Shown here: piece after piece, positions 18,311 through 42,630 of the stretch
How positions within the stretch are numbered: the first letter of the stretch is position 1
How the letters are laid out: each line of letters begins with the position of its first letter
Origin: Trichoplax adhaerens
Lineage: Eukaryota; Animalia; Placozoa
Direction of reading: 5' to 3'
DNA length: 64,000 bases
Assembly (NCBI RefSeq): GCF_000150275.1
Contig: NW_002060949.1
Coordinates: 4,955,006-5,019,005, forward strand
Program-made: the position numbers and the translations under genes
Notes under the pieces: model-generated
Databases searched by the model: none
Told to the model about the DNA's origin: nothing
The model's input: only the letters and a program-made list of their open reading frames with translations

Positions 18311-18314
18311 AAAC

Positions 18315-18995
18315 TCACGTAGACGGCTTGCGATAATGTACCCATTTGTTAATAATTAACAGATAGTATTACCATTCGACATTATATATATTTATATATA
18401 TAAGGAGAGCGGGAATGGCAATGAAGGATGACTAATATAGTAGCTCTCCACTTCCTAGGATATTATTTGCCAAAAAAAATAAACAGTTGAAATACTGTAT
18501 TTTGGATTAGTATTAGTTCTCTCAAACTTGCATAGAACTATTCACGTCGACGGCTTACGATAATGTACCCATTTGTTAATAATTAACAGATAGTATTACC
18601 ATTCGACGTTATACATATATATATAAGGAGAGCGGGAATGGCAATGAAGGATGACTAATATAGTAGCTCTCCACTTCCTAGGATATTATTTGCCAAAAAA
18701 ATAAACAGTTGAAATACTGTATTTTGGATTAGTACTGTATTAGTTCTCTCAAACTTGCATAGAACTATTCACGTCGACGGCTTGCGATAATGTACCCATT
18801 TGTTAATAATTAACAGATAGTATTACCATTCGACATTATATATATTTATATATATAAGGAGAGCGGGAATGGCAATGAAGGATGACTAATATAGTAGCTC
18901 TCCACTTCCTAGGATATTATTTGCCAAAAAAATAAACAGTTGAAATACTGTATTTTGGATTAGTATTAGTTCTCTCAAATTTGCATAGAACTATT
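18315..18995. repeat. Tandem array, 3 copies of a 227-bp unit
   Basis: TCACGT(A/C)GACGGCTT starts at 18315, 18542 and 18769. Confidence 0.96.
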
Positions 18996-19619
18996 GTGTT
19001 GTCTATTGAATTCGATTGGAGCATACTGTACACTACTGTACACTATATTGTAGAGAACCGTTTCAGTAGCCTGCTTGACTACAGATTCCGAGGGAAATGG
19101 GTATGTCCATCCACATGTCTATCATAGTAGAAGAAAGGAAAAAAGGGAATTTTGTTATGGATTGCCTATTAAGTTATTATAATGATGCAGTAGTCTCCAA
19201 TATGAGCCACACTGATTTATTATATTTTAAAACAATCAACTTGAATTAATGAAGTTATTCATAATGAATATGGTATAGCAAAGTAATGATCTGATATCAA
19301 TATTTTGGGCAACGTCTCATTATAATAAAGTCGTTGACGGGTCCGACAGTCTGAAATAGACTTCCTGCCAAGTTGACCGAAAAGGCAAGATTGATCATAG
19401 TTGATCATGTATTGAGCGAGGTGGAAAAATAGCCAACGTTATTAACGAGCAATTTACTGTGCTAATTTTAGTAGACTGGCGCCATTCTACGACTGAAAAA
19501 TCTTCATCGTCGATAGCTAACAATTAGTACTATCCATATGATATTATTAAGACTACACGGGAAAACTCAAGTAGTTTGATAAGCTTCAATAGGGCCTTGA
19601 ATCCCGTCAACATTCAAGA

Positions 19620-20656
19620 ATGAAGAACACCACCTATCATAATAACTCAACAGGTACCACTCCTTCGCCTATTCAGGTAATCACTATCTATGGTATCATA
19701 TTTATTTTATCCTCCATTGGTAATGTTTTACTATGTGTAGTAACGTATAAGCAACACCATCGACGCTATTCTAGTGCTAGGTTATTTATATTCAACTTAG
19801 CAATTGCTGATCTGATTACAACCGCAAGTATACCCTTTATAGCCGTAGTGACTGTCTTTGACGAATTTCCCTTCGATGATTTCCTGTGTAAAGCTATTTA
19901 CAGTGTTCGCAATTGGGCAGTCTATGCAACGGCGTTAAATCTTGTCGCCATTAGCTACGACCGTTTGCTTTGTATTCGATCGCCGTTAACCTTTGGATTG
20001 AGTAAAAGATCAACTATTACGCTTATACTCATCGTTTGGTTTACAGCATTGATAGCTGTCTTCCCGCAATGGGTTATACTTCAGGTTCAGGAATTTCATG
20101 GTGATCATTATTGCATCGAAGCATGGACATCGCTAAAGAGTCGCCAAGCTTATTCAATCTCGATGGCGGTGTTATTCTATTTTATTCCCTTACTATGTAT
20201 TTGCATTTTCAACACTGGTATCGCATTAACCATATATAAAGCAGCAAGACAAGAAATTAATCGCAGCAAGGTTATTTCCAAGAGTAAAAGAAAAATCACC
20301 ATCATGATGGCAGTTATATGCATCATATTTTTCTCCTGTTATGCGTTAGCTTACATCCTTATCATATTAATTGATTTCAGTGCTCTCCCTTTGAATCCAT
20401 TCAATTCTTCGGATATATCCTTTTTCTTATTGCTGACTATATTGCTTATTCTCATTCTATTTGGAATCCTATTATCTATGGATTATTTACTATTGCAGTG
20501 AGAAAATACTCCAACAAATTGCTCTCATGTACTCGTTCGAAATCTCGCAATTCAGTGATAGAAAAAAATGGGACCAAACTTGCAACAATGACGCAAAATC
20601 GTAATCTCTCCAAGAGCAACCTAACTACGGTGCAACCTCTTCAAACAACTGTATGA
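19620..20656 (+). CDS. Intronless class A (rhodopsin-family, peptide-receptor-like) GPCR with an apparent 1-nt frameshift before TM7 (pseudogene, allele or assembly error)
   Basis: GN in TM1, NLAIAD in TM2 and YDRL (DRY-like) are in the first frame. TM7 SHSIWNPIIY (NPxxY at 20465-20479) and the C-tail to TGA 20654-20656 are in a different frame. Confidence 0.85.
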
Positions 20657-23600
20657 AAGAACGGATTGATAACCAAACTGAATAGCTATTGTAATCAAAT
20701 AAAAGTGGATGGTCTAGCAAATTCTTGATCATATAAAAAAAGGGTTATCGTGAATAAACGCCTGGGTAATCATAAATTACTTCGTATGCTCTGCACCTTA
20801 TCATTGTCTGTAGCAAAATCATGATTAACGCGAAATAAGGGTAATAGCCGTTTAAAGCTGCTAGATAATTTTGGAATATCTCAAAATTTACAAAGTATGA
20901 AGATAATGATCTTTAGCGAAAACTTTCTCGGTTTTAATATATATTGTATATACTGCACAGTATAATATCGACGAATAGGAACAGACATAATATTATTAAG
21001 TTTATCAGAAACGCTTGTAAAGCGATTCTACTGAAGATTGGTTTGATAAGATTGTTTTGATTTAGTAACTACAAAGTGTCAACTGCTAGCACTTTAAGAG
21101 ATATTTTATTGCACTCCATTTAATCAACGAAAATTGAAAATTGACGTAGCAAATTGATCATGATTCAATGCAAAACAAATCAATTCACCGAATGATCAAT
21201 TTTGTGAGTTCGATTTTATAGTTATTACTGATTGTAAATTTTTTAGCCCTTCGAAATAAAGGTACATTATTCTCAATGAAGCTGATTTTTGGTTGCACTT
21301 TGTTAGCCTATGTAATAACGGTATATAAAGATGCTTACTATAAAGCAGCAATGACTATACATCGTATCATAGTATAGGAAGGTAAATAACTTGTCTATTT
21401 TGCAACACTTTCTTAATCTTTTCCTTGATCAATAGCAAATAAATAGAATAATGGCACATTTAGAGAACTGTAAATTCATGAGAGGTAAAGTCAATAGATA
21501 ATAAAAGAGTTATTATTCATTTGTTTATGACTTTGACGAGTTAATATGGCAACTGTGGGTACAATAATGCCTCTATATGGTGCAACAATTAAATGGAATT
21601 GCTCTTACAAAGTATAACAGAAGAATTAATTCTTCTGTTGCATTGTTTGCAGTTACTACGGAAACATAACTATCATACACAAGTAAATTTTTTATCGAGT
21701 TATTAATTAAGCTGGACTCGATTGAATATCCATCATACTAGGTATAATTATTTCCGTTAATTTTAAAGTTAAAGATTATACTGTTAAAATCAGCTCGAAA
21801 ACTTAAATTACGCTAACTATGCTACGTATTTATTATTTAATGAATCATGGCAACTATTGAAAATCAATTACTTTACTTCAGGTCTTTAGCCTCATGATAG
21901 ATAGTAATAAATGGCAAACGTGGCCCGAAATTCAAACTAGCCTATTTCAGTGTCCTCACGCTATTCACTGAATTAGAGAGATATTGCTATAACTATATAA
22001 ATAGTATACTGGCGTTGTAAAGTACTGTACAGTTCATTCTAGCTGCTGTTACATTCTTGCTACTATGTTAGTATTGCTCCGCGTATTCTAGGTTAGAAAG
22101 TAAAATAAATTTAAAGATGGATGAAAATGGCTGTCATCAATAAACAATAAGATTCGGTCAGAGTCAATCTATCAGGTATGCAATACTAGGAGTTTCATAC
22201 TACAGTTCAATCTTGATACCCTCTATATTAGATAAATAAAATCTTCAGGATATATGGTTTCGTGCGTAATCAGTACCTGTATGAATTACCTTCAGTAATC
22301 TAACTTCAAAACAGTATCACTTTATTGCTATTTATTAGCTATCAATAAGTATACGATATTGTTAGGTGTAAGATGCGTTGTTATTAACTATATGGTACTA
22401 CACGGATACTGCTGAACGTTAGGATAATTAAACTTAAAAATACTACAGTAGCTAGCGCAATCAATCATAAGAAACGCTATAGTACCGGTGTCAGAGTTTA
22501 GAAATGCTATAAAAGAACCCGTATTTCATCGCTTTTCGGAGTCAGTTAAAGCAAGGCACAACTCTGCTAATTATAAATTGTTGAAAGCAAGCGAAGAAAA
22601 CCCAACATAGGGCGATAGCTGCTACACAATCAATCAAGATAGGCAAGACCTTGAACAGCAAATTAATACCACTACTTTTACGGTAGTAGAAATAGCCGCC
22701 TTAAGTAGATAGTGAAGTTTGTTACAGTCAAACTAATAAATAGATCAATCAGATATATATCTCATTGTCGCCTAACTACTATAACTCGGTACTGTTTACA
22801 TTCTAAGTTAGAAAAATAATTCCAGCTGCAAATTGGTTATTTTTCTCGTTTATGGGTTCGAATTTGTAATCACTACTTGAATCAGTATATAAATTAGCTT
22901 GATACCGTTATGAATTTATTTACTTTCAATGGCAATCATCACAACTACCTTTAGCTCATTATTTTCTAGCAATTACACCTCTCTCGTGCCTCCTCTTCAC
23001 TAAATTATGAGCTCAAATTTTATAGATATAACAATTAATTTACGGCAAACCTACACAGCTATCAATACACATTACTTAAATAACATTATAAATAGATGTA
23101 GCACACCGTCAAGCTAGTTGCAAGTATTTATTATCTCTTTATTAATACATGCTTGTTAAATTATCTAACAAATGCCATATGGCGATGATTAAATAATTCT
23201 CTTGCATTATAATAATGTATCGTACTTTAGCACACACGAGGTACAAAATGCACTAGCATCAAGGCAGTTGATTTAGATAATTCAGCTTTATCTAAATAAA
23301 CGGCATTAGAACTTTGAAATAGCATTATTATCGCATCTTAATGCAGTTCATATAATTATTTTATGCCCATAACCAAATGTATTTTTAATAATAATTAATA
23401 GAGTCATCATATAGATAACTCCTATACTGTAGATTTAGTAAATATTTATTTACATTCAATGTTATCATGAAACCAAAAGGCAACAAAAATTATGCTATAA
23501 CAACAGCGTAATAATTTTTCGCGATCAGGTCATTTGTTGTTCTTCTACGCTATACAAGAATATCGTAAGTCTATCTATCGATACTAAGCAAAGTTCAGAT

Positions 23601-24789
23601 ATATTCTACTGAGCGATAAAGATCACCCCCACACGCTAAGCTTAATCGACTTATGATCTGATCAAGCAATGTACGAGTATACACGTATAATACGCATATG
23701 CCGCACCGTTACTCTAAATCATTTCTGTCGTAAAATACTGTTGATAGAGTTAATTTTTTCTCTTCTGGCATAATCCACAGAATTAGTTCATGCAGTTGAT
23801 AACAATCTACTTTAAATCCTTTAGAGATTTCATTATCCAGTATTAATTATAAAATTTGATGTTGTCATGGTATTAACAGAAAAGACTAGTTTACGAAAAT
23901 CTACTTGCACCTTATATAAAGTGACGTGCATTCGCATATCAGCTACACTTTTAAAAATAATGATAATTTCATTCTGAAATTCGGATGAAAGCATACATGA
24001 AATTTATTGATAGGTTTAACGCGATAAATAATAATTACAAGACTAATTCATCAGAAATAGATTCCATGAAGCTTGTCATAAATTCGCAATTTCATTTAGA
24101 GGATACAGTGTTGGTTAAATAAACAATTACAATATCTGTTGAGAAGTATGGTAATTGCAGTTTTGCCATCATATTCACAAATCTGTCATTTAGATATTAA
24201 TACTGGAAATGATACAATTATGAGTATTTAACTCAACACAAGAAATTTACATTTCGATTCATCAATTTACGTTAATATATGTATATATTTACATGTACAG
24301 AGTCTAAACACGAATAAAATTGAACTAAAATTTTTGATAAATGCCGCTCTTTTATAGATTTCACTTACTGTCGATATAGTCGAGTTATATATATGTCACA
24401 AATTGATTCGCTATTAGGTTAGTTGCGCCATCTTATATCGGAAATGGGTAATAAAAAGTCATGTAGTACCAATTCAATGTACAGGAACTTCAATAATAAT
24501 ATCAATTACTTTGTACAATTTAACGTCGTCGTAGCGCAGATAAAATACTTTTATCAATAACTGAGTTATAAAATTACTTACTGTAAGAATTAGAACTCAT
24601 ACCAAGTACCTGAATAAGATTATTAACTTGTTCATTGCAATGAGACAATGTACAGTAATATTTAAAAATATAATCCAAGCTTGCAAGGATAAAAAATTTT
24701 TAAAATGAGGCATCTCTTCTGTATATTTCCTTACCAAGTTTGCGCACAACACGACGACGATAAACTAATCTACAAAAGGCTAAATTAAA

Positions 24790-27700
24790 TTAAATAATCG
24801 GTTGAGATTTCTTCATCTCAATGTCTAGCTTGGCTAGATTCTTCTTTATCCGTAATGCTGTTAATCTTGCCGGCGCAGACTGATGCCAACATTCAGATAG
24901 AACTTGACCAATAACTCGCATATGCTATAATTGTTAACAAGGATAAAAAAAGCGATTACACCTAAGATAACAGTTATAGCTATATCTTTCATGTTGCGAT
25001 AACACTTACCGCATCCCTAATCCATACATCATATATTGGTGGCCGTGTGTTTTGCAGCACTACAACCTCCTTCATTATTTCAAAACCTGGGTCCTGCGGT
25101 ACCTTATCCCAATAAGGTAAATGGTGTTCAACTATTCGATCATCATCGTCTATTATAGAGAGTGTATACACATATGTATCAAAAGATAGTTCTAACTATT
25201 TATAGGAAAATGCAAACAATTCAAACGTAAGGAAAAGCAATAATTATTTACCGTTGATAACGCTGCAAATGCATATTTCCCACAATACAAGACCAAAGGA
25301 GTAAACATCTGCCCTTTTAATGTCTTCAAATTTAGCGGTATTCAAAGTATCATTTAGAACTTCTGGAGCCATGTATCTTTTCGTGCCTACTCGCTTGTTT
25401 GGAGCAATATCTACTGTATCTTTTTCGGAATCATAGCGCACAGCCAAGCCTAATAACAAGTAATATTAAGTAGAACAACGTTGATCTAGATTAAATTAGA
25501 CAGTAAAATTTTAAACCTGAAGTTTATTTTTCCTACCCAAATCTCCAATACAGCAAGTCTTGTCACGTTTAACGAGAATATTCCTGGATTTGATATCGCG
25601 ATGAGCTATAGCGGGCTTACCTTGTTTACCAACAATTTCCGCATGCAGATATGCTAAACCACTAGCAGCTGACAAAGCTAATCGAATCATGTCAAATTTA
25701 TCGCAATACTGACCCTTTGAAAATTAAGATAATAGAAAACTAAGCAGTGAGCAATAATATGTAAATTTTATTGGTTGTACCTGTAGATAATCATACAACG
25801 ATCCGAATTCATGATAATCTGTTACGAGATATAACTGAGTAACACTTTGGCTACCCATAATGTCAGAAGCGATGTAGCCTAAGATATTTTCATGTCTCAT
25901 TAATGTTGTTTCATAAATTTCAGTTTCTCTTCTCCACGACGCTTCCTATAATTGATATTTAAAATTATTGTTACATAAGCGTCTAGAGCAAATTCAAGCA
26001 TAAATACAGCACAGTGTATGAAATGACCTCTATTGAGTAAAATATCTTAACAGCAACAAATCCACCGCGCCATTTTGCCATCCAAACTTCACCAAATCTT
26101 CCTCTTCCAACGGCTTTTACTAAAGTGATCTCTTTAGCAAATGTTCTCTTGACCTATTTTAAAGATTGTGGTTATCTATCGTACAACTTGCATTCTAATA
26201 ATCCCATTCGCCTACATTTAATGAAATATAATTTTACCATCAACGGCCTTCCAGCGCCTGAACCCGAAGTAACTTCACTATAAATTTTATATGATTCCAT
26301 AGTCGCTGCACTTGTACCATTTCCATCATTCATATTTAAATCTAAGCTAGAAGACGACTCCCGCTGATATTTTCGCTTAAACCTATATTGAATGAATATG
26401 AGCGTTAAAGAACTTCTTGAGAAAATTTATTTTTTCGGGCAAAGGCATTTACGCTGAAAACCAATAAATGATCTAACGTTCTATTTATCACAAAATGTGA
26501 ACTTTATTAAAGAACACTGTATAGGTAAATTCTTTTACCTTAGATAGAGATAGCCGGTGGCTAATACGATGAAACTAGTACCAATAGCAGAACACACAAT
26601 TAATGCGATATCACCACTGTCGATTGGTCTTTGGGTGCTTTGAGTTCCTAAAAAAAAGGAATTACACGCGTATTGGTTGTGTTGAGGCATCTACGTAATT
26701 TTTCTATTACTTTCAAGAATCAATGATCGACGATATTACTACCACGTGATGTACAAAAGTCTAATTATTGAATCGATTTAAATCAGTCAATTTATATGTC
26801 GTTAATTATAAGTTAAGAGGGATTACAGCACCTAAAATAAAAAAGCGCGAAATATCTTATAACTCGTCTATAATTATTTAAAATTCAAATATCCTCGTTG
26901 ACACCTTTCCGTTAAAGATACAAAATTAATCGCTCCAGGATTTACCTATCGGCGTCGATGGCTGAGGCTTCATCGTTGGTGGAGGATAAGTAGGCGGCGC
27001 CAAATTGCAGTAATCAGAATTGCAACAACGTATATAATTTCGAATCGGTGCATCTTTATTCGGTACAAAGTTACAGTGAAATAGAGTCGAACCGCTACCG
27101 TTGACATGCGACAAACAACCCATAACACTAGTAGTTACACTGCCATTGACTTCGAGAGAATGATAGCATCTAGATTTATCACGATTAGTTGTATTGCACA
27201 ATTTACTGCCATTCTTACTAGTATAACAGTGATTTGCATTTCCATGACTGTTACAATAGCAAGTGAGAGATATCGCTGAAAATAGATAAGGTTTATAAAT
27301 TAGTTGATGCTTGTTTCTTCCTTTCTTCTTTTTCAACATTATCTTATAGATTGCTTGCACAACTCAGTCGACAGTGGACAGTCTAGTTGATGGGAGGATC
27401 GTGGATTATTATTTTTGCTAATGGTCAATTTAAGCTTTTTAATAGTTTTCATCACTAGTTGAGGGATTTACGTGTTTACAAAGTAATTTTTGGCCGTATC
27501 TTAAAAAGCTCTTGCTATATAATGGGCAAATAGAATTAATTAAAAAATAACTGATAAATTACGATTGATGCATTAATCAAGATAACAATATAAATTATCA
27601 GGCGATTAATTGGCGATATATCACTGATAACAGACACAGAATTGATTAAGTGAATAAACCGATTAGACCATGAAAAATGACTCTACGTACTTTTATACCG

Positions 27701-29672
27701 TGCATAGCAATAACTATCTATATAATCTCATTCATCATGCGATGGCGGATGATTGATTGATTTTTCGCTATGTCAAGGATCGTGATAATATTGTTGATAC
27801 GTTTATAACTAGAGTATAAGCTTGAAGGAATTTCCTCTCGAAGTAATACCATTTTAATATAGCTATTTGGTTACCAGTAATTTTTTATAATCCCCAATTG
27901 TAACATAAATAGCTCGCTCCACTATATTGAAATTAATTTTTGCTGAATGTTATTGTCATGAAATACTATGACAAAGAAAAAATTTAGTGTAGCATGCAGG
28001 ACAGTAGAATGGAAAAAAATAAAAATTAATATACAAACTCGATTGACTTTATCGCTTGCGTAGTATTAAACTATCCATTAAAACACTAATGAGAACACTA
28101 TTGAAATTGCTAACAGCATCAACGCTATTGTTGTTGTTTTTATACAGTACTATGGGGTTTCTAGCCATCTTCAGAATATAAATGACCGCGTGATGTACCA
28201 TGGACTTATAGATCATCGCATCTAAAAGTCCATAGTTGTACTCGTACGTAGAGGATTTTTGTTCAGATAACGATACTTGAAACAAGAGTTGATTTATTCG
28301 AGGCTTTTTCTACATGCCATGATGGTATAAATGATGTCATACTACTGTAATTTACTCTAATGCATACGTTGAGATATCATTATCGTAGATATGACTAAAA
28401 ACGAAAACAAATAAAAAAACTAATTACTATAATGCTTTCCTTGCCTCTCTATCTAAAAACATGATTGCCTCCGATCGTTGCCAAAGCAATTCTGTATGTA
28501 AAATACGTAATAATAATACGATTAATCACTGGGAAAGATTGTCTAAAATATATACTGAAGAATGCATGGGTAATTTGGTATATACTGTAATATAACATTG
28601 ATAATACTACAAAGACATGATCATTGATCGACATGCTAGTCCGCAATAGCCTCATTAAAATGATAATAATACATTACTTAGCATTGTTATCAAGTGTACA
28701 CTATAGTGTTTATAGGATTTCTCTCTTGAATAGACAAGAAGAGATCTGATGATAACGTGATGAGAAGCTCCATCCAATTCATCATCGTATCTTTATTTCC
28801 ATGTAGGAATGGAGCGATAGATTGACTAACGCCATCGGCGGTGAAGTCAATCGACGATCATGATGAGTACAGAATAATGTTTCAGCTATCATAAAATTGA
28901 GTAAAACGAAACTGAAGATTGTGTGTCTGACTATGTACGTAATGAAATATAAAGATACAACATAAGATTGCATTCATTAATTGTGCGTACCATGTAATAA
29001 TAATAATGATGATCATCTTTTTTTCCACGACATCACTATCTGTCTTGTGTCCAGCGTAATGAATAACCAATCCATTCAATGAGTTGGAAGTAGAGTGATC
29101 AATCGTTTACTAATTGAAATGAATTGGTATCCTTTATAGTTGGATAAAATTTCAAATTCCCAATTTGAAATAGATCCTATTTAATTTACCTAATAGGGAG
29201 AATCAATCCTAATCGAGTCATTGACATTTTACTCCTTCTAAAGTCAGTGTAGTAATTAATCAATGCAATAGGATGGGCTTCTAGTGTGATTGAATTTCTT
29301 CCTAAATCCTCCAAAGGAACTACTACAAGACCGTGAATCAAGATAGCCTTGAATGGGCCGAAATCTCAATCATCGGTATCGTGCATGACCTTTTTTGACT
29401 GTGAGTTTGCATTAATCAAATAAATTTGTTTACTCGCGGTTTACCATTTCATACACGATTTTACTGGAGAAGCGCTAGTCTATCAACTTATCATACCAGT
29501 AAATTAAGCAAAGAAAAATTAAAAAAGAAAACCATACACCTTATGATCATGCCAAAAAATGAGCTAACATGATGAAATAGTTTATCGATCATTTCTTACC
29601 ATGTTCACAAACGAAGAGTATTGACAAAAGCAATAAAATGCGATTGGAAATATTACGCCTTGTCGTCGCCAT
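24790..29672 (-). CDS. TGF-beta superfamily type I receptor Ser/Thr kinase, BMPR1/ALK3-6-like; exons 29600-29672, 26946-27275, 26539-26647, 26238-26382, 26028-26153, 25781-25945, 25537-25714, 25252-25449, 25010-25149, 24790-24924
   Basis: Signal peptide, Cys-rich ectodomain with CCNSDYCN box, TM, GS box [25 protein letters not shown] and GTKRYMAPE. The L45 loop [15 protein letters not shown] resembles ALK3/6 (AADIKGTGSWTQLYL) more than ALK1/2 or ALK4/5/7. Confidence 0.93.
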
Positions 29673-29924
29673 GTTTGCTTTGAATGTCGGCGACACGCAC
29701 GCGTAGTGTTTACATAACCTCTTATCTTAATCTTTTTATTATGCTGGCGAGCGAGACGACTGTCGATCGGTACAATCAAAGTTGACCCGTAATCTTCTGA
29801 CGTAACTGATACGAGACCGCCCCGGACAATAAAAAATCACACTACAGTGTTGAAAGACGTGACGTTAACCAGTCAAAAAGCGCGATATCCGTGGTGACTT
29901 GCAAAATGAAATGTCACCCATGCA

Positions 29925-31470
29925 TGTACATTGTTCTGTACTGTACACTATAGTACTACAGTATACTGTATAGAGTAGACTGTACTGTAGACACTATAGT
30001 ATACTGTACTGGGTCAAGAAGAGAAAAAGTTCAAGGCAATTTTTCTTTCAGGACACTATAGTATTATTGTCAACCAGGTCCAAAAAACTGCATATACTGT
30101 ACTGGAATGCAGTCAATCCTTCTTGTACTCAGTTGGGCTCGTTAATTAATGATGATGAGTATTCAAAGGGTAAATCTACAATCTAGCTTGTGGCGTGAAA
30201 TGGTATAATTACGCCTATATCAACATACCAGTAATCGGAATTGAATACATGACAAGGCTCTTATTGTAAATCCCGGCGACTTGGACTCTTTCCGGTCTTG
30301 TGATTCGCTCTACTTATTGTGTTGTACTTCTACGGTATTAGTCTCTGGTCGAATACCGTAATTCGGTACCAAAACGATACGCTACTACCGTTCAGGACTA
30401 GAAAAAAAAATCTTTTCCAGTAGTCCTTGATTCGGTATTTCGGTGTACAGTACTGTAGTACTGCACTACGGGTATACAAGACTGTTATTCGATTGAATAC
30501 AGTTATTCAGCCACCCTTTGGTTTTATGGTGGCCGTCGAATGGAAGGTGTACTCTACTCGATTAGCAACAGCAAAGTCATCTATTCTCTTTACTAAATAA
30601 TGTGAAAGTTGTCGAATTAATTCAAGCGCTCCATTGATCCCTAAGCTGGTTCTCGAATACTGTACAGTACACTGTGTACAGTGTACAGTGTACAGTACGC
30701 CAAACTAGAGTACAGTACAGTACTGTACTGCGCTTAGTGCCGACTGCAGACTACAGTACAAATTATACTGTACTGAACACAGTGTACAGTATATGTAGTA
30801 CTGTACATTGTACTGTAGTGTACTCTACTCTTTTAGCAATTAGCAGCAGCAAAGTCATCTATTCTCTTTACTAATAAGAGTGAAACCTTGTCATATTAAT
30901 TCAAGCGCTCCATTGATCCCTAAGCTGGTTCTCGCATACTGTACTGTACACTGTACAGCACTGTATAATAGCAGTGTACTCTGCTCTATTAGCAATTAGC
31001 AACAGCAAAGTCATCTATTCTCTTTACTAATAAGAGTGAAACGATGTCGTATTATTAATTCAAGCGCTCCATTGATCTCTAAGCTGGCTCTCGCATACTG
31101 TACAGTACAGTGTACTGTATAGTCTACAGCACGCCAAACTACTGTACTGTAGAGTACTGCGCTTAGTGCCGACTACAGTACAAGAGCAACAGCAAAGTCA
31201 TCTATTCTCTTTGCTAATAAGAGTGAAACGTTGTCATCATATTAATTCAAGCGCTTCATTGATCCCTAAGCTAGTTCTCGCAATAGCAATGTACTCTACT
31301 CTATTAGCAATTAGCAACAGCAAAGTCATCTATTCTCTTTACTAATAAGAGTGAAACGTTGTCCTATTAATTCAAGCGCTCCATTGATCCTTAAGCTCGT
31401 TCTCGCATACTGTACTGTACTGTACACAGTGTACAGTACAATAGCTTCTCATGCCTGTACAGTACAATGT
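29925..31470. repeat. TACAG/CTGTA tracts in the receptor/HSPBP1 divergent interval
   Basis: Dense at 29925-30105 and 30445-31470. Confidence 0.9.
30547..31405. repeat. Five copies of a ~93-bp module separated by variable, mostly TACAG-type spacers
   Basis: AGCA(A/G)CAGCAAAGTCATCTATTCTCTTT...ATTAATTCAAGCGCT...TCTCG begins at ~30564, 30842, 30998, 31184 and 31313. Confidence 0.95.
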
Positions 31471-31538
31471 TCTGTACAAGTGTACATTCCTTGACGTGCA
31501 CTGTCTACACAACGCGTGCGCACTTGTTAAAATCAAAC

Positions 31539-34527
31539 ATGGCAGATCGCAGTAGAAGGAGAATCAACATCGAAGGCGTGTTGCGATTCGCATTAGAACA
31601 TCAAGATGCCCCAGCTGCTGGAGGAGAAATTGCCTATCAGCCTATTTCGGAAGATGTAAGCTATACAATGTTAGAAAAAGATCGATTTTCATGCTAGCTA
31701 AGCCTAGATCGTTTACTATCGTATTTAGTAGTTTTTTCTTCAACCAAGTGTTGATTTCATACTCAAGTCGGTGATTCAGTAAACACTGTTGAATCTCTCA
31801 TATTGTATCATTGACACAACGATCTTGAACAGACGAACAATAGTAGGATAGTATCAATGCATAATATAACTTTCTCTTCCTTAATCGATCAACTTATTTT
31901 GACTTGAACATAACTATACAAGAACATTCATACACACGTAATGTTGCATATACGTATGGTGTAGTAGATCGAGAAAATGGGTTCAGAAATGTATTGGTTT
32001 TAAACTGCATATCATAGACACGTGGGGAATGGATCTAGCATAAAATGATCCTTCTCCTCATTGGAGATACGATTTATAACTCTACGTAGAAAGTACTACA
32101 GGAAGTGTTGAAACACTTATACTAATATTGATGAATAAATGGATTGATTAATGTAAAGAGACGGACCTGGTTGAGAGCAGCATTAGATTTTTTATCCAGC
32201 GCAGAAAGTGAAATTGATCGCTTGAAAGCTTGTACGGAAGTATTGAAAAAATCGGAAATGAAACGAAAGGAGCGCAATATTGATACTTATGCTGATTCCG
32301 ATGAAGACAAAAAATTAGTTCTAAATGCTTTGGAGGAGATTATTGAAATTATCGATCAGATCGATAATGCACGAGGTAAGTTTTTGCTTTATGTTCATGA
32401 TAACATTTAAAAAGTTAAGCTTGTTCATTCCATGTAAATATCAATGCATTTCTTTTCCAATAAAATAAACTTCAGTATTCAGTATTGTGATAGTGCAGTT
32501 TTCCTCTTATAGATTGTAGGTAGATGTAATTTTCGTTATTTGCATTATTAGATTTCTGTACTATTGGTGGATTGAAATATGTGGTTAATTTAATCGAGGA
32601 AATCAAAAACAAGTAAGTTATTCCACTGTACCGGTAATACGAGTACGCGTATTAATATTACATATAAATAGAAGCTGGTTACTTTAACCTACTGTAGAAC
32701 AGTTTAATGTCGATGTAATTACGCCTGGTTGAAGTGATATCACATTTTACTATTCGAAGATATATCTATTTGATATGGGAGTTCAAAGTGTCAAATTAAT
32801 GTCTGATGCAAATATGCTATTAGTGTATACTGTACACCTTAGCGGCTAATGTTACCGCTTGAATTGAATTCAGTCAATTAATAAGATACTATGGTTACCC
32901 TGATCCCACTCATGACGGGATTATGTTCCGCTGTAAAGTAATTTCAGATTGGATTTATAAATTGTCTGTAGTCCTTTACAGTGACACCTGTATGGTATTT
33001 GATTTGATCTTGCTAATATGAACATTTTATGAACGAATTAATGATTTCAGTGATATCATTATTGCCTCATGTAACGTAATTGCCACCGTCACTCAAAACA
33101 ATCCATCGTGTCAAGACTTTGCTATTCGTTGCAAAGTTATTCAGCCGTTACTAAATTTGTTGCAAAACTCGGATGTGACAGAAGTTAAGGTTAAATGCGT
33201 ATATGCATTATCAGGTGAGAGGAACTACTATTTGAAAGCACTCTATTATGACATCATGCTGTATACTTTGAAATATCATTGAGCATGTATCGGCTACGAA
33301 GATAGCAATTGCCTCTGTCATAAAGCTAGTTCTAGTTATTTATTGCTACAGTCGAAAGTTTCAAGCCTTACTGTCCTATAGATTAGGCAATGTAGTACAT
33401 CCGGATGCATCCTAGCCGTGTAGTATATTTTCATTAACAAATGAATGATAGGCTGTTTGTCATTTTTGCTCTATCGTACATTCATAGTCTTAACAGATAC
33501 ACGATCGTAGCGATTAAAATTCTTTTTAGAAAATCTTCAACTGCGCTGCCTGCGCAATATGTATACGTAAATCATTCATCTAATAAATTATATCTTCTAA
33601 CTGGAGATCGCTTAATGCAACATTTATGCAAAGAATCTTTTCGTAACGTCTTGATTTCATTAATGAGTAGACAGTAGACTATGGTTCTAGTTTTAAGTAT
33701 ATCTGGATTTGAAATACAATATTGTCAAATTATAGCATATAAACAAATTATGCAAAAGAATGGCATCCAGTATAACTTTTATAAAGTAAGCTAATAAAAT
33801 ACTGTTACCTTACAATAGGCCTGATTAGAGAGCACATAAAGGCCCAGGAGTCATTCGCTGAAAACGATGGATACTCAATTATTGTTCGTTCCCTACAAGT
33901 GAAGGCGCCAAAATTGCGAATTAAAATAGCTTTCTTATGTAAAGCGTTGTGTGCTCATCAACCTGAAATTAAAGGTAAGATTATTCCAATTAATATTACC
34001 AGCATGATGATACCAAAATATGCCAAAAAGTATTGGGTTTAAATGTACATTAATATCGTTTGGTTATTGTATGGCTATTAACTATGTTTTGTGATTGTTT
34101 AATTTCTGTTCTAGATATTCTACTTCGCGTTGGATTTGTTGATCACCTTGCTGTGATTTTGCAGGAACCTCACAATAGCTACCATGAACACGTCTTGAGC
34201 GCATTAGTAGCTATAACCGATAATTGTGCTCCTGCCGTTGAAGCATGCCGTCAATCGCATCTTGAATTTGAAAAATCACTACGCTCGATCAAAGATCAAA
34301 TTTTATCTAGCCCTGAATTACGTGATTCACAGCAGGTATATTACGATAACTTTTGTAATCATCGTATTAAAACGTAGTAATTATAGCAAGAGCAGCTTAC
34401 AGTACTATCGCTATGATGAGTGCCGTTAACTTTATCAAATATTGATTTACAGGAAGAGCTGCAATATTGTGAGAAATTATTAACCTGCTGTTTTGACAGT
34501 GATACTTTAGCAGTCGGAGAAAGATAG
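31539..34527 (+). CDS. HSPBP1: Hsp70 nucleotide exchange factor HSPBP1/Fes1 (ARM repeats); exons 31539-31655, 32159-32375, 32552-32612, 33051-33214, 33819-33974, 34115-34335, 34453-34527
   Basis: RRTWLRAAL, IDNARDFCTIGG, TQNNP and KCVYALSGLIR motifs. No signal peptide or KDEL, so not SIL1. Introns are phase-consistent GT-AG. Confidence 0.88.
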
Positions 34528-35706
34528 TTTTCAAATGGCATACAGACTGCTATGGGACTAATTCTTATAAATCCAAAGTCATAATCATATGGCACTAAAT
34601 TTACTGTGTATAGCGATACGAATATATTAACGATTTTATTATGGTTGATGCTTATCTCACTTCAGCAACGGGTACATTTATTTTGAGACTAGATGTATAT
34701 GAACGTCTAACTATTTCAATTTTAACTCTGTTGTTAACGTTAAGTAGCTCTTTAGTATCAATTAGATCGATTAAGTTTTTTCGTCGTAATTGACGATATT
34801 TATGTCATTTTCACTTTAAAATTGTATGACACTAATCTATATCGTGATCATGCGGTGGCACCGTACGATAACTAATATACATACTCGTATATATATATAT
34901 GTTTACGCAGACAGATTGCGAATTGAATGGCTTGTATTTGTCTTTTCTAGATAAAACATACTGGATAGTAACATAATAGATGCTTCTATTTCAATAAAAT
35001 TACTATGAATTGTTGATTATAAACGGCTTTATAATTAAATTTTGTTTCATAGTTACAAGCAGCAGTTGTTAATTACTGATTCAGAGCAGGAATGTTTTAA
35101 TAATTTAATCCGCTAGTTCCTTGCTATAACTTTATAGTTTTAGAAAAGGCACAGTATTTTCAATGTATAGGCACAAGATCGAATAAGAAAAGTGATACAC
35201 CTATCTATGAAACGAAGCTGGCAAGCCTTATTGCTTAATGCCTTTCATGATACAGTACATAGAAGGAGAAGCCTTTAACTATAACAAAATAGTTAATTGA
35301 CCGTAAATACCGTAAATTCAGATCAGTTGTCAGTTAATAATATGCGCTGTAAGTGTCAGAAGAAGACGACTACTATTATTATATCATAGTTAAGATATAC
35401 TAGGCTACCAAATTGGCTTATGCAAAGCGTAAAATGTGTCAAGAGTTGGATTAAAATACAAACGAGGTACTGCAACTCTAATTTCTTTTCTTTATTTATT
35501 AGGGCAAAATCGATCAAATTTTAACTGCTACACATTAAGCTATAGTATTAATATTTCATTCTTGTAATATGATATCATGCGCTTACCTACATCACGCGTC
35601 TATATGAAATACAGAAAATGATTTGAATACTTTACGTAAAAATTTAGAAATTTTCTTACAGTGTACTAGACTAAAATATGACTATCATAAAATTATGCAT
35701 TTATTT

Positions 35707-37341
35707 TTAATCCACAGGGGTGACAGCAACAGCTTCATTCTCAATGCTGCATTCATCAACACCACGAAGGATTCTAAAAAAGCCATTTTCTCCCCATTTT
35801 GTTCCCCTACATTATAAGTATTATATTTTTTTAGAAATAAGATTGAAATATTTATCAGAGTTAAGGTAATAAAAGGATAATTGTTAATTAAGTTGATCTT
35901 GTATATATGCGATAATTAAATATTTATCTTCTTTAGATAGTAAGCACAAAGAATCTAATTAAAAAATTCAATGTCGAGATAATCTATAAGCATACATCAT
36001 CATATCGGTTACATCAATTGATTACTCATGACTGACTTACCAAGAATTTTTAACAATCCAGTAGTCTTTGCCAGATTTCTGGTCAGTTCCATAGCCAACT
36101 AATAAAACAGCATGGTTGGTAATCTGCCATGGATTATAACTATCTCCTAATCCGGTATGCTGATAAATACCACCTTTGTAATGCTTAAAATCGCCATAAA
36201 CCTCAAAACTAATAGAAATAGGGCCATTCTTTACCAACTCGCGCATCATAAGGTATTCATTGCATGCACCGTAAAATCCACCAACGTAATAGTAGTTCGT
36301 GGTCGAATGGCGACGGCATTTCGATTTGGTTTCTTTACACGGTTCGTCTTTTCCATTATAAGGGAAGCAGCTTTCTTCAACTAAGCCAAAATCTTCACCA
36401 TATTTACCAGCTATTAAGTATGGAAAACCACCAGCGCAACCTTGCGCGTACTCACTACAACTGACAACATCTTGAGGAGACATTACTCTTTTTACGCTAT
36501 TCTTACTTAGCACTCTGAGTCGAGCTTCATACATTGCCATGGAACTAAATGCGTAACAGCTACCACATGCTCCTTGATTTCTGACAGGCGATACGTAGTT
36601 CACGTTGGATACATTACGCCAATCAAACTGTTTTGGGAAGTAAATAAATTCGTCACTGTTACGAGATAGTCTATCTCGTTTCATCCTAAGTCGAGGTCCA
36701 GCGAAAGATTTGGGTACAGTTGGTCTACCAGATCGCATATTTAATTCAGCTAGAGTAAAATCTTCATATTCTGGGTATTCAGTAGCAGTCCACAAGCTTT
36801 GTGCACTATTAATTTGATTGATATAATCTTTATTGGGTATATATTTACGATGTTTTTGAAATTCTTGTAGAACAATTTGCTCTCTTAGATCGTGAGTACG
36901 AATTTCAGTACCTGATGGATGCATTTTAGTAGCATAATAGCATTGCCAATTGCTGTTATCGGTACTATGAGCCCATCCAAGTTGGGTTTGATCGCACATA
37001 CTGGTTACTTTTGATCCGTGCTTAACATATTTGGAAAATGCAAAGTATTTTCTACCAGCTAAGACAATTTCAAATCCTTGATTATAAACCATTGTCCAAA
37101 AGCCTACATTTCCAGCAGCATCGACTGCTTTATCGGGAAAGAGTAGGTGAACAGTATAGTTGTTGGTAATCTTGAAATTTTTAGAGCAATCCACTTTCTT
37201 GGTCATTCCATCAACACCCAAGTGCAGCACCCATGTACCAACGGAATCGCCATAAGTACAATTGGCTGGTGTATCGCTCTTGCATAAAGCTAAAAAGGAA
37301 AAAAGAACGACAACAACGCCAGCAAAATAGCGAGAATTCAT
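35707..37341 (-). CDS. CTSC: Cathepsin C / dipeptidyl peptidase I, 466 aa; exons 36041-37341 and 35707-35806
   Basis: Signal peptide then exclusion domain DTPANCT..., [10 protein letters not shown] catalytic Cys, TNHAV His, KNSW|G Asn, ending RGVDECSIE. Confidence 0.96.
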
Positions 37342-37494
37342 GTCGATATTGGTAGTCGATTGGAGGGAAAATGCTTGATGTTTGTCGGCGAGATTTTCCT
37401 GACTGGTTGCAAGGTTACCGACTTCCAGTGTCACCGTATCGCTGCTTCGAGCTTGAATCACATGATTCGCATGCAAATTATTCACTTTTGTGTT

Positions 37495-37615
37495 ACATAC
37501 CGTACCGTACCATAAGGGTTACCTTCATGAAGGCTACAGTACTGTACTGCACTGAACCACAGTACTCTGCATTGTAGCGTTTAGTGTACTGTACTGTACT
37601 GTAGAGTACTTACTA
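37495..37615. repeat. CCGTA/CTGTA pentamer tract just upstream of CTSC
   Basis: ATACCGTACCGTACC, TACAGTACTGTACTG and GTACTGTACTGTACTGTAG. Confidence 0.85.
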
Positions 37616-39532
37616 GAGATTGTATAAAATTTACAGTATCCCAGCAACAACTTCGACACCTGGAGAGCCTAGACCATAACATATAACGGTAGTGATAAAT
37701 TATTTGTCAGGTCTAGATAAATATAATATTTGGAGGGCCTTCATGAGTGCTATAGTAGATTGGAGTCGGATTGGACGCGAGAAAACAATCTTGCATTTCG
37801 AAATGAATAAGATGGAAGTTGCAGAATACTGCAGTGTACAGTGCCATAAGCGGCAGGTTTTTTTCTTTAAGCCCATGATATTACTCTGGCACATACTGTT
37901 CGCTACGAATTGCTTCTACGGATTACTAACTGTATCAATTAATTTAGTTAACCGTATACAGTAGTTTATTTAATTTAATTAGTATGTATTTTTGGTAAGA
38001 TCCTACTAACTTTCAGGTTATTCACAGAAGATTGTACTTTAAATAGCATATTGCGTGGATTTTATACATTAATTCATTAAATAATTAATTATAATGAATT
38101 CATGGAGTAAGAAATAGCAGAATCATGCAATATTTTCTAATGAAAAGAGTGTATAAAAATGACCGTAGTTAAACTACAGTACTGTATCTAGTAACTAATT
38201 ATAATATTAATAATTCATTCGCTAGGGTTAGGGTTAGGGATATATACAGTATAAAATAATTGATTCACCGCTCGTGTAAACGGATCTACAGTATTCAATA
38301 CTGTAGATAGAGCTGAAAGTATTACTGTTAAGAAACCTGGAGCAGTATATAAAGTGATGGTAGTGGTAGTAACTTGTCAGTATGCACTTTCTGGGCTTCC
38401 TACGTATTGCCATTTCTGCTAATTTAAACTTCTTACTAGTTATAGTTACTTATTGCTAGTAATATAGTACTATACTACACTACTGGATATTGTATGAACA
38501 TGAAGGACTCACCTGTACGAGTATACACTATTGTATACCAATAAGCAACCAATATGAAGTTCTTAAGAGTACTAATGTAAGACTCCGCTAACTGCATTAA
38601 AAAAATGGCTATAACTGGTGATACGCTGAATTGATAGTCGTAAACAACATCAGTATCGCTAGTTCTTTTATAACTCAACAAAATATAGCTTACATAGAGA
38701 AAATGGAACACTTTGCCGCTGCCATTGTCATTTGACCTCGCAGCTTCGTTACTTTATTTATATACTCAACAAAAGATAATAATATGATGATAGCGTCGTG
38801 AAAAATATAAATATGCCTACATTCCTCTACAAATCCACGATAAGCTGCAAACTACGTACTAAATTTTTTTGTAATACGTCAATTTAACTGACTATGAGTG
38901 CAGTATAAGTAGATACGTATTAGCGAGAATCGAGTCGTATAAGAATGGCCCTACCAGCTACATTTGGCACAATGTCCATCAACTGAAGTTTTTTGGCTGT
39001 ACAGTATTCATTATATATAGCCTCACATTATATCTGTATATTTATCCATTTATATATGTATATATAATAAATAGATATCAAATAGGTTGAATAAATTTTA
39101 GGACGCTAAAGAGGATTAGTAAGAGTAGATGACAATCAAATCTTCAAATTGGCTGCCCAATTGAATAGGTATACGCCTTATGTATATCATACAATGTGTG
39201 CAATATATACAAAGTATTATTCTCTAATTCGCACAGAACGAATATCTGGTTATTATTGGTATACGAGTCAACCTACCAGTCGGTAATGGCGATTATTTCG
39301 ATATAGTAAATCATCGACACCCCAGAATACAATACACGCTAGAGGGCTATCTCGATAATTAACACCTATCATGTAAAGTTTACAATATAATACATAATCT
39401 CTAGCAATTCCTATCAATTTATACAATGAATGTCATCAACTGAGCGTCAATTAATAAAATTGAACGGTTTATACAGTTCAAATCGCAATATATTTATATA
39501 TGAAATAATGTAATGGCTTATACTGTAACTAA

Positions 39533-40888
39533 TCAAACGTCTAACGGATGAGAATGGCATCTAATGGTTGGATTTCCAACAGGGAAATCGTCTGTGATGG
39601 CTAATTCACTAAAATCTATTCTCACTTTTCTGGCAATTTGCAACATTCTAATTTGATCTTTTGGACGGATTTGATGTTCGGCAAATCGAGACTCAATTTC
39701 ACCTCTTGTATAGTTATGATTAGGTTCAGGAGGATAATAAACATGAAATCCTGTCGTAAAAATGAAAGACTTGAAGTTACGATTCACTGGCAATGAGAGA
39801 AAATTACAGTGTGTGCGTATACTACTTTACTCTATTATACGTAGTAGTGTCATTCTGTAATTGTAAATCAGTATTTCATGAGTAACTTTTGCATCTAAGC
39901 AAAATGTACTTTAACTAACAGGAATCAATGATAAAACTTGACCACAGTAAAAGCATCAGTAAAAAAGGTGATATAATATTTCAATGAAGCAAAATATCGA
40001 CTCACGATTATCATGTTGAGGAATGACATTGAATTGTCTACCCAAAATGGCGACGTAAACGTCATCCACACTACTAATCACACGAACAGATTTGATAGCT
40101 AAAAGTAACTTTTTGACGACCGATCCCGACATTACGTAGGCAAAACCAGAGCAAAATTTAGGAAAATGATCAGCAGGATAATCTTCATATGATACGAAGT
40201 ACTTATTCCGTCTATCGCGAACGACCATACGAGCTAGAAGAGAGTGAGAAGAGCGACAAATCCAGACGTCTTCGTCGTATCGTGTTAGAGCAAATTCTCG
40301 GATAGCATCAAATAGGAGTGGAGCATTGACGAAAATATCGTCATCACCTTTGAAGAAAAATTTGGGCTGACAGTTCCGATGAGCCCACTGCATTCCGAGT
40401 AAGGTCTTGTAGGTTAAATTTTTCATACAATCAATAAATTCTCCTAATACTAAGTCGCCATACATGTGAGATTCTTCTTCGATTTTCTTATCCTTTTCTG
40501 GGTCTCCAGTCCTACCAATGACAAATAACGTCCTCCAAGCATAAGGATGATTGATCCTATTGATGTATTCCTTGCCATCTCCCCAACTTCGTCTAATTGC
40601 ATTTCGCCTTTCAAAGTGAGTTGGATACGAATTAATAACTAAGAGTACGAAAGCAGGTTGATCGCATGGTGTAGCGCTGGAACGGTTGTTGAAATTTAAC
40701 TTATATACCATTTCATCGTCGGGTAAAACATTGGCTTGAACGATATAAACTAATAACACAATATACATTACTATCCCCATGATCATACAAGTTCCTAACG
40801 CACACATAAAACATGAAGGTAAATATTCTCTTTTAACAGAAGTGGTGACGAATCGTTTGGCTCTTTTTCGTTTGAATGTACGAGTCAT
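39533..40888 (-). CDS. GT31 family beta-1,3-glycosyltransferase (B3GNT/B3GALT-like), type II membrane protein; exons 40006-40888 and 39533-39750
   Basis: RRNAIRRSWG, NLTYKT, KGDDDIFVN, FCSGFAY and VDDVY motifs. The phase-1 intron joins DN-RFHVY in frame. Confidence 0.9.
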
Positions 40889-41217
40889 GGATTACTCAAC
40901 CACCATCTACAGTGCGTGTACGATGCCTTTGGAAAGCTAAAATTCGTATCGTAGTCAATTGCTTGAGCAGTGTTGAAAAAATGCCACGTTCGAAGGCAGT
41001 TTCTGCCTAATTCTTGAAGTGATCCAAATGATAGTTTAAGCAATCAAAGAAGGATTATAATTCCAAGTTATAAATAAACTGCAACTTTATCGTATGCTAG
41101 GAATAGCTTTCATGTACATTTTGAATCCTTCCTGAACTGAGCAGAGAGGCGTGAGGCTCGAGGAGATGTCAAGCACTGTTGAAATCATATCATTGTACTC
41201 TACCGAGGCGTTGACTC

Positions 41218-41422
41218 ACTACAGTACAATTTTACAATCTTTTTTACAGTACAGTATGCAATAACAGTCATGGCTAATGAATTTTGAACTGTACTGTACA
41301 GTACAGTACTGTATAGTACTGTACCATTTGACATTTACAGTACTGAAAGTTTTACAGCACTGTACAGTACTGTACAGTACAGTGTACAGTACTGTACTGT
41401 ACAATGGACAGTACTGTACTGT
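41218..41422. repeat. Dense TACAG/CTGTA tract
   Basis: For example ACTGTACAGTACTGTACAGT palindrome at ~41359. Confidence 0.93.
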
Positions 41423-42505
41423 CGTGGGCCTGAGTGCTGGTGGATGGATGGACGTAAAGGACCAAAGAAGTGACACAATCGAGCTTGTTTCGCTCGTTTG
41501 TAGTGGCCTCAATGCCTCATTGGGTGCTGGTGGACGGACAGCCAACGAGGACCAAGGATGTGACACAAATGGACGAGCTTGTTTCGTTCGTTTGTAGTGG
41601 CCTCATTGAATGCTGGTGGACGGACAGCAACAAGGACCAAAGAAATGACACGAAACGAGCTTGTTTCGTTCGTTTTGTACAGTACAGTGTACAGTACAGT
41701 AGTGGCCTCATTGAGTGCTGGTGGACGGACAACCGGCAAGGACCAAAGAAGTGACACGAAACGAGCTTGTTTCGTTCGTTTGTAGTGGGACTAGTGGCCT
41801 CATTGAGTGCTGATGGACGGACAGCCAACAAGGACCAAAGAAGTGACACAATCGTGCTTGTTTCGTTCGTTTGTAAGTGGCCTCATTGAATGCTGGTGGA
41901 CGGACAGCAACAAGGACCAAAGAAATGACACGAAACGAGCTTGTTTCGTTCGTTTTGTACAGTACAGTGTACAGTACAGCGTATAGTACTGTACAGTAGT
42001 GGCCTCATTGAGTGCCGGTGGACGGACAACCGTCAAGGACCAAAGAAGTGACACGAAACGAGCTTGTTTCGTTCGTTTGTAGTGGGACTAGTCTCATTGA
42101 GTGCTGGTGGACGGACAGCCTTCGAGGACCAAAGAGGTGACACGAAACGAGCTTGTTTCGTTCGTTTGTAGTGGCACTAGTGGCCTCATTGAGTGCTGAT
42201 GGACGGACAGCCATCAAGGACCAAAGAAGTGACACGAAACGAGCTTGTTTCGTTCGTTTGTAGTGGCCTCATTGAGTGCTGATGGACGGACAGCCAACAA
42301 GGACCAAAGAAGTGACACGAAACGAGCTTGTTTCGTTCGTTTGTTGTGGCCTCATTGAGTGCTGATGGACGGACAGCCCGAAAGGACCAAAGAAGTGACA
42401 CAAATCGTGCTTGTTTCGTTCGTTTGTAGTGGCCTCATTGAGTGCTGGTGGACGGACAGCCGAAAGGACCAAAGAAGTAACACGATCGAGCTTGTTTCGT
42501 TTGGT
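41423..42505. repeat. GC-rich minisatellite, 12 copies of an ~83-bp unit, ending ~125 bp before the RAD54B ATG
   Basis: Consensus GTGGCCTCATTGAGTGCTG(G/A)TGGACGGACAGCCnnnnAGGACCAAAGAAGTGACACGAAACGAGCTTGTTTCGTTCGTTTGTA. Confidence 0.97.
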
Positions 42506-42630
42506 ACTGAAGCAGTCCGGCAGGATTCCGGTGTTCAGTGAATTCACAGTGAAAAATCAACTACAAATGGATGCCAAATTCTGCAAATAAAATCGAAATT
42601 TCATGATATAAACAACATCAACAATTTTCA

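Follow-up and report, generated by a model that had tools for sequence, protein, structure and literature searches.

A stretch of 64,000 nucleotides from the placozoan Trichoplax adhaerens (contig NW_002060949.1, positions 4,955,006 to 5,019,005 of the forward strand; hereafter the window) carries many tracts of a short promoter repeat, the pentamer ACAGT and its complement, and records how such tracts are gained and lost. The window belongs to an assembly of 105.6 Mb in 1414 scaffolds, has a G+C content of 33%, and holds animal genes for a rhodopsin-type receptor, cathepsin C, a galactosyltransferase and MFS transporters. Pentamer tracts lie upstream of the open reading frame (ORF) of a G protein-coupled receptor, of a gene start at 31540 and of the galactosyltransferase ORF. 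According to the ORF reading of the sequence, clusters of tracts adjoin ORF or gene starts at 19620, 31540, 37485 and 40888. Three tandem arrays, with units of 227, 83 and about 118 bp, hold or adjoin such tracts, and within each array the sister units differ in their pentamer content. The initial annotation had taken these three differences for independent insertions of the pentamer at GTA sites. All three are present, but the comparison of sister units suggests only two derived gains in the window, together with one probable loss and a third gain elsewhere in the genome. An identical copy of the gained sequence lies near every gain.

The window pentamer is the already published (ACAGT)n promoter microsatellite, with the same motif in the same genome. 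(ACAGT)n is the most abundant microsatellite of Trichoplax adhaerens and, for the most part, lies upstream of genes at distances within 1-5 kb (Wang et al. 2010, PMC2871265). In the genome, ACAGT and its complement are repeated far more than chance would give; a four-unit 20-mer occurs 1486 times, against 0 occurrences of the reversed control, and tracts occupy about 0.9% of the sequence. In the window, the pentamer 5-mers stand 2.1-3.3x above composition expectation. How one pentamer reached the upstream regions of thousands of Trichoplax genes is a question that has been standing since 2010. The published work covers abundance and position only (PMC2871265), and the A/T spacer symmetry, the mixed orientation and the gains and losses between sister repeats that are described below come from the present analysis.

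Gains and a probable loss between sister units

The comparison of sister units covered every tandem repeat in the window and in an unselected 200-kb block (scaffold C1414, C1414:2000001-2200000), 264 kb together, out of a genome with roughly 9,200 minisatellites, and the polarity of gains and losses was assigned by parsimony within the arrays. The features discussed are collected in Table 1.

The simplest difference is that of the 227-bp array, in which TTAGTATTAG becomes TTAGTACTGTATTAG in unit 2, a core change from TAGTATT to TAGTACTGTATT, and units 1 and 3 lack the extra bases. By majority, with one of the three units changed, this is best read as a derived 5-nt gain. The extra bases do not duplicate adjacent bases, and the flank shares only TA/GTA with them.

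In the 83-bp array, nine of the eleven internal junctions read TTTGTA-GTGG, and the other two hold a pentamer tract. These two inserts occupy the same junction in two highly similar copies of a 280-bp block, and they are therefore counted as one gain, which was copied with the block and was followed by a 17-nt change in one of the copies. The insert has only TA/GTA in common with its flank, and the content of the inserts is irregular, with a GT interruption and the string CGTATAG. An identical 22-mer, the candidate template, is found in the tract that adjoins the left edge of the array. It has 181 copies in the 105.6-Mb genome, and from this number and the genome share of the tracts we estimate the chance of its presence in the neighbouring tract at about 0.01-0.05. 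An origin of the insert by unequal exchange with the left edge of the array was rejected, as the insert comes without the remaining 30 nt of the tract and without the diverged first unit. Most of the 17 nt added in the second insert read as the reverse complement of the 10 nt just ahead, with a 10-bp hairpin stem as the result (z -2.9). This addition is compatible with fold-back synthesis, although in a repeat of the form (GTAC-W)n, as described below, any added T-type units would pair likewise with upstream A-type units.

Apart from these junctions, the 83-bp units are conserved save for a window of about 4 nt between GGACAGCC and AAGGACC, which is different in almost every unit (AACA, GGCA, ATCA, CGAA, TTCG, GTCA). 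Every unit closes with a small hairpin, followed by TTTGT. A motif of the GACGGACA type, considered as a link between the 83-bp unit and other promoter repeats, was dropped, with only 10 genome copies of GACGGACARGCC and a pattern that does not match the 83-bp units.

The third gain lies in the unselected block, at C1414:2187187. Here, a clean 5 nt is present in one of three units, at a TA site in non-tract flank (AAGCATATT to AAGCATACAGTATT), and is derived by majority. Only TA/GTA is common to insert and flank, and an identical 8-mer is found 22 bp upstream. TA or GTA stands on both sides of the insert at each of the three gains, which amounts to microhomology at both junctions. For the 227-bp and 83-bp arrays, the proposal that the pentamers are derived gains and not copies of adjacent bases is thus upheld, with the short state in the majority of units or junctions and TA/GTA alone shared with the flank.

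The array of ~118-bp units paints a different picture. In units 1, 2, 3 and 5, the last being the terminal one, TACTGTAC directly follows CTCG[AC]A, and unit 4 is without a tract. AATAGC stands after the tract at unit 2 and again at unit 5, where it runs into non-repeat DNA; the tract therefore lay inside the duplicated segment. Since four of the five units, including the terminal one, carry a tract at the same base, the short junction most simply represents a loss, and we consider the loss of a tract at 31277-31287 more likely than an insertion. The polarity initially proposed for this array, an insertion, runs against the majority state. Moreover, the short site CGCAATAGC contains no GTA, and insertion at GTA sites, bounded by TA/GTA, describes the 227-bp and 83-bp arrays but not this one. 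The initial annotation had itself named short alleles that arose by deletion as the outcome that would speak against it. Internal parsimony points to this outcome in the ~118-bp array, and to gains in the other two.

Table 1. Positions of the arrays, tracts, inserts and candidate templates in the window
Feature	Position	Strand	Remarks
Two large tract clusters	17568-17903 and 18184-18311 (span 17568..18311)	.	Upstream of the 227-bp array
227-bp tandem repeat, 3 units (starts 18316, 18543, 18770)	18316..18996	+	Units ~94% alike
Candidate template TACTGTATT	18715..18723	+	18 bp upstream of the gain; identical to the post-insertion 9-mer 18733-18741
Gain of 5 nt in the 227-bp array	18732..18736	+	Unit 2 only; placement ambiguous within 18732-18740
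Five ~118-bp units	30539..31407	+	Unique to own locus; pentamer tracts of 36-159 nt between units, save one junction
Tract after ~118-bp unit 2	30937..30966	+	Between CTCGCA and AATAGC
Junction CTCGCA-ATAGC after ~118-bp unit 4	31277..31287	+	Sole junction without tract
Tract after terminal ~118-bp unit 5	31408..31439	+	Followed by AATAGC, then non-repeat DNA
Pentamer tract adjoining left edge of the 83-bp array	41288..41422	+	Single-stranded DNA fold -38 kcal/mol, z -6.3
22-mer identical to the 83-bp array insert, candidate template	41371..41392	+	Same strand, 305 bp upstream
83-bp tandem repeat, 12 units	41424..42510	+	Unique to own locus
Higher-order block of three 83-bp units (~280 bp), copies 41578-41856 and 41857-42151	41578..42151	+	96.7% identical, insert at the same junction in both
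First insert of the 83-bp array, between TTTGTA and GTGG	41676..41698	+	Tract of ~22 nt and one extra T; internally perfect 12-nt duplication
Second insert of the 83-bp array	41956..41995	+	First insert and 17 further nt giving a 10-bp inverted repeat; in the higher-order duplicate

To estimate the probability of finding such templates by chance, CWGTA was placed as a mock insertion into TA sites between 26 and 1000 bp away from tracts, and a covering copy was sought within 50 bp. A copy of at least 9 nt was present in 5.8% of the trials, and one of at least 8 nt in 10.9%. The chances for the three observed templates are 0.058 (9 nt at 18 bp), 0.109 (8 nt at 22 bp) and about 0.01-0.05 (22 nt at 305 bp), and Fisher's method combines them to about 0.01 by our own arithmetic. 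Based on these three events, there is moderate support for local templates. The assumption of insertions that lack a local template and require an unknown polymerase or reverse transcriptase is not borne out, as an exact DNA copy lies near every gain. Template switching, offered in the same place, is a reasonable mechanism for the two window gains. A comparison of irregular 16-mers shared among neighbouring tracts was underpowered, its near matches being dominated by the insert of the 83-bp array itself.

The unselected block contained 23 arrays (7.3 kb) and 20 indels of at least 4 nt. Eleven of these indels fell in the 22 tract-free arrays and none of the eleven was pentamer-related; the other nine fell in a tract-bearing 480-bp repeat and were almost all unit-sized changes of the tract. 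In this block there was thus one pentamer birth among about 12 indels of at least 4 nt outside an existing tract, and the window, by comparison, had been picked for its births. The indels of 5, 10 and 15 nt between sister-unit tracts correspond to whole units, and the larger differences of 17, 22 and 30 nt do not.

The first ~70 nt of each 227-bp unit (18322-18391 in unit 1) belong to a dispersed repeat family, which may be a transposon end and has at least 179 candidates in the genome at 91-97% identity, with 70 copies that have exact anchors. At the GTA/GTAC sites of this family, no pentamer insertion was found in 70 copies of TAGTATTA and 37 copies of TGTACCC. These 107 site-copies speak against a generally high rate of insertion at GTA sites.

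Architecture of the tracts and distance from them

The pentamer tracts are best described as (GTAC-W)n, that is, as GTAC palindromes with one A or T between them. Throughout the 264 kb, the dominant distance from one GTAC to the next is 5 nt (198 cases), followed by 7 nt (44 cases), and spacings of 4 nt are rare. The 7-nt variant period, (TGTACAG)n, is seen for example at 30661-30696 and in many other tracts. At 5-nt spacing, the base between two cores is A in 91 cases, T in 98, and G or C in 9. Genome-wide, six in-register GTAC cores with A/T spacers occur at 1042 places, and only 234 of these have all-A or all-T spacers, which implies a chance of about 31% for an A/T switch, and hence a switch of orientation, per unit. 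G or C at the central spacer was found at only 30 places (2.8%).

The two orientations of the pentamer differ in one spacer base only, and orientation switching is therefore general to every tract. The switching that the initial annotation had noted in the inserts is a property of 77.5% of the six-core tracts, whose spacers are mixed. Relative to G/C variants, A/T switches are far too frequent for ordinary point mutation. The restriction to A and T can be read in either of two ways: as the result of copying onto both strands at the self-complementary GTAC, or as the result of selection that permits only A or T. The ~31% A/T switch per unit and the mere 2.8% of G or C at the same position are two numbers that any model of this repeat has to explain.

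Besides the tracts, isolated motifs are also in excess. After masking of tracts of at least 10 nt, the count of TACWGTA was 261, compared with an expectation of 55 (first-order) to 124 (third-order), and five control palindromes of equal composition stayed near expectation. The density of isolated TACWGTA falls from 12/kb at less than 25 bp from a tract to ~2/kb at 0.1-1 kb and 0.54/kb beyond 5 kb. The control palindromes are flat, at ~0.2/kb at all distances. This near-tract enrichment fits local seeding, the decay of old tracts and promoter selection alike. The claim that the differences arose at unrelated loci is not supported: each of them is found no more than ~420 bp from a tract already present, in a region just ahead of an ORF or gene start.

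Probable copying from nearby tracts and alternative explanations

In our opinion, the differences between sister units probably reflect the ordinary turnover of the known (ACAGT)n repeat inside tandem duplications, by microhomology-primed copying from nearby motif copies together with slippage, loss and array duplication. During replication or end-joining repair, a 3' end halted on a chance TA or GTA near a tract would anneal over 2-4 nt to a motif copy in the neighbourhood, copy 5 to ~22 nt, and return via the newly made GTA. Because it returns through the GTA just made, the insertion would be GTA-bounded and identical to neighbouring sequence. The new tract would then grow or shrink by slippage, which may land on either strand, and thereby mix orientations, because GTAC is self-complementary. 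Tracts would also be lost by deletion, as probably happened in the ~118-bp array, and unequal exchange would duplicate units plus whatever tract they hold, for example the 280-bp block of the 83-bp array and the unit-plus-tract repeats of the ~118-bp array. What the sequences show are the indels, the identical copies close to them, the composition of the spacers and, by parsimony, the polarity of the changes; the polymerase step and its enzyme are inferred. A gene for a family-A DNA polymerase is present at C1410:6404684-6406503, with three exon-like matches to PF00476 and a 780-aa open frame upstream; it speaks for feasibility only, and points to the family and not to polymerase theta in particular.

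Copying of this type has several known counterparts. In quasi-palindrome or short template-switch mutation, the strand under synthesis jumps to an imperfect repeat close by, inverted or direct, and perfects it, which resembles the 17-nt addition that makes the 10-bp perfect stem in the second insert of the 83-bp array. Such events are usually single corrections within one quasi-palindrome, and not the seeding of a genome-wide repeat. Templated insertions made by synthesis-dependent microhomology-mediated or polymerase-theta end joining are well described (PMC2943611, PMC5728401, PMC5068794, PMC4912351). They are short and identical to a sequence close by, either directly or inverted, have microhomology at their boundaries, and are promoted by sequence that can form hairpins. 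The gains of the 227-bp array and of C1414:2187187, with templates 18-22 bp off, fit this description. In contrast, the template of the 83-bp array is 305 bp away, and slippage at a replication fork could give the same product.

The birth of ordinary microsatellites has been described as insertion of one or two units followed by change in whole units, with slippage that has no length threshold (PMC2997547). Classical birth of this kind duplicates adjacent bases, whereas here the flank and the insert have only GTA in common, and what remains of the insert corresponds to a copy farther away. The 5, 10 and 15 nt indels agree with whole-unit slippage, unlike the 17, 22 and 30 nt differences. Moreover, unit and orientation are homogeneous in a classical slippage microsatellite, where point mutation gives rise to the interruptions, and the orientation of these tracts changes about every three units.

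Several points weigh against copying from nearby tracts. The polarity stems from parsimony inside arrays and not from an outgroup, and the template probabilities are singly modest, at 0.03-0.11. The 305-bp distance is long for a templated insertion of the end-joining type. The sample is small, with three gains in 264 kb, two of which come from the window picked for them. Selection for promoter function could also yield the near-tract enrichment and the A/T-only spacers, and the ~31% switch of orientation per unit is not predicted by classical slippage alone. Young sister repeats are a valid way to watch the birth of a repeat, and the evidence here favours local copying, then slippage, with losses too.

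A more far-reaching version of local copying is doubtful, and we offer it as a speculation. Strand-symmetric, tract-proximal copying might spread (GTAC-W)n from existing tracts to TA/GTA sites within ~1 kb, with an orientation flip about every three units, and might explain as a mutational drive, rather than selection alone, why the repeat is found at thousands of placozoan promoters. The self-complementary GTAC core would let a free 3' end re-pair in any register and on either strand. If true, this would be a clear case of a repeat that spreads within promoters through its own sequence symmetry.

Selection in place of biased mutation is an unlikely explanation, in which a promoter factor binds GTAC arrays at 5-bp spacing with A/T spacers, and chance indels or substitutions that create or extend an array are kept near promoters, and others are lost. 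The position of the tracts upstream of genes (PMC2871265) and the recovery of ACAGT by a sequence-to-Hi-C model, as a motif linked to chromatin contact patterns, are in its favour, as are G/C spacers ten times rarer than A/T switches and the 2-5x enrichment of isolated TACWGTA after tract masking, which is strongest near tracts. However, 5-nt insertions that spell the motif make up ~1% of random 5-mers, yet three were seen, and selection does not predict an identical copy near each of them. In addition, the arrays are young duplicates, 94-97% alike, with little time to sort many events.

It is quite unlikely that there were no gains at all, and that every difference is a loss or an artefact of array history, with units duplicated with or without a pre-existing tract. 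The ~118-bp array is best read in this way, the tract at the left edge of the 83-bp array shares its unit phase with the internal inserts, and unit-plus-tract repeats are common, as in the comparison of scaffolds C100 and C1413 below. The extra 5 nt of the 227-bp array and of C1414:2187187 do not fit, because they are clean, confined to one of three units, and set in otherwise collinear unique sequence. Neither does the 83-bp array, which is tract-free at nine of eleven internal junctions and whose insert is not trailed by the diverged first-unit sequence expected from duplication of the array edge.

A dedicated, sequence-specific machinery that adds the pentamer at GTA sites genome-wide, be it an RNA-templated reverse transcriptase, a telomerase-like enzyme or an unknown polymerase, is very improbable and also unnecessary. 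It would account for the same motif upstream of thousands of genes, for gains that are not copies of adjacent bases, and for isolated seeds that are still ~2.5x over controls more than 5 kb from tracts. RNA-templated addition, as by telomerase, would keep one fixed register and orientation, whereas single inserts here contain both orientations and interruptions such as GT and CGTATAG. Further evidence against it is the DNA copy near every gain, the 0 insertions at the 107 site-copies of the dispersed family, and the other 22 arrays of the unselected block, which show no pentamer indel.

It is equally improbable that the tracts are derived from or tied to mobile elements, whether as tails, as preferred targets or as excision footprints, for instance of the promoter-associated placozoan Mutator elements: although Mutator elements whose terminal repeat bears a motif are reported from loop-forming promoters (PMC12221973), the start of the 227-bp unit is dispersed, and tracts adjoin repeat units at 17904, 18312 and 41423, the 83-bp and 118-bp units match their own loci only, the inserts have neither terminal repeats nor target duplications, the 4-nt GTAC spacings expected from 9-bp target duplications are rare, and transposable elements make up 0.13% of the genome and are reported inactive (PMC2871265). 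The promoter hubs with the Mutator motif are similar to the tracts in being promoter-proximal repeated sequence of the same genome, but the Mutator motif is part of a transposon end (Kim et al. 2025, PMC12221973), and ACGG (transposon) and ACAGT appear as two distinct motifs in a later preprint.

Related sequences and other repeats

In a search for an outgroup that excluded records of this genome and its nearest kin, the best relative of the neighbouring cathepsin C is only 87% identical and lies on a 3.9-kb contig without tracts that ends short of the arrays. Many small scaffolds are rich in tracts, and they were considered as second haplotypes. The 1-kb scaffold C100 matches C1413:3353400-3354700 at both ends (96-97%) and has ~546 bp in place of the 17 bp of C1413. 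A ~205-bp tandem repeat with a pentamer tract inside accounts for this surplus through additional copies, and the difference is an unmerged haplotype or a collapsed array. As it concerns the copy number of the 205-bp repeat, the idea was given up and the pair serves as an example only.

Scans of the window for Rfam families and tRNAs gave no matches. A local tandem duplication (80 bp x1.6, 17905-18035) lies between the two large tract clusters upstream of the 227-bp array, begins directly where the first of them ends, and is found at its own locus only. The 204-bp x5 tandem repeat at 2301-3329 has units that are 95% alike; its sole indel of at least 4 nt is a simple 9-nt tandem duplication, and no pentamer change was seen among its 68 GTA/TAC sites. 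A (TACGG)n tract is located at 7911-7963. ACGG repeats are described as a transposon-borne motif tied to insulation in Trichoplax (2025 preprint). In the tract-masked sequence, TACSGTA is also ~3x above expectation.

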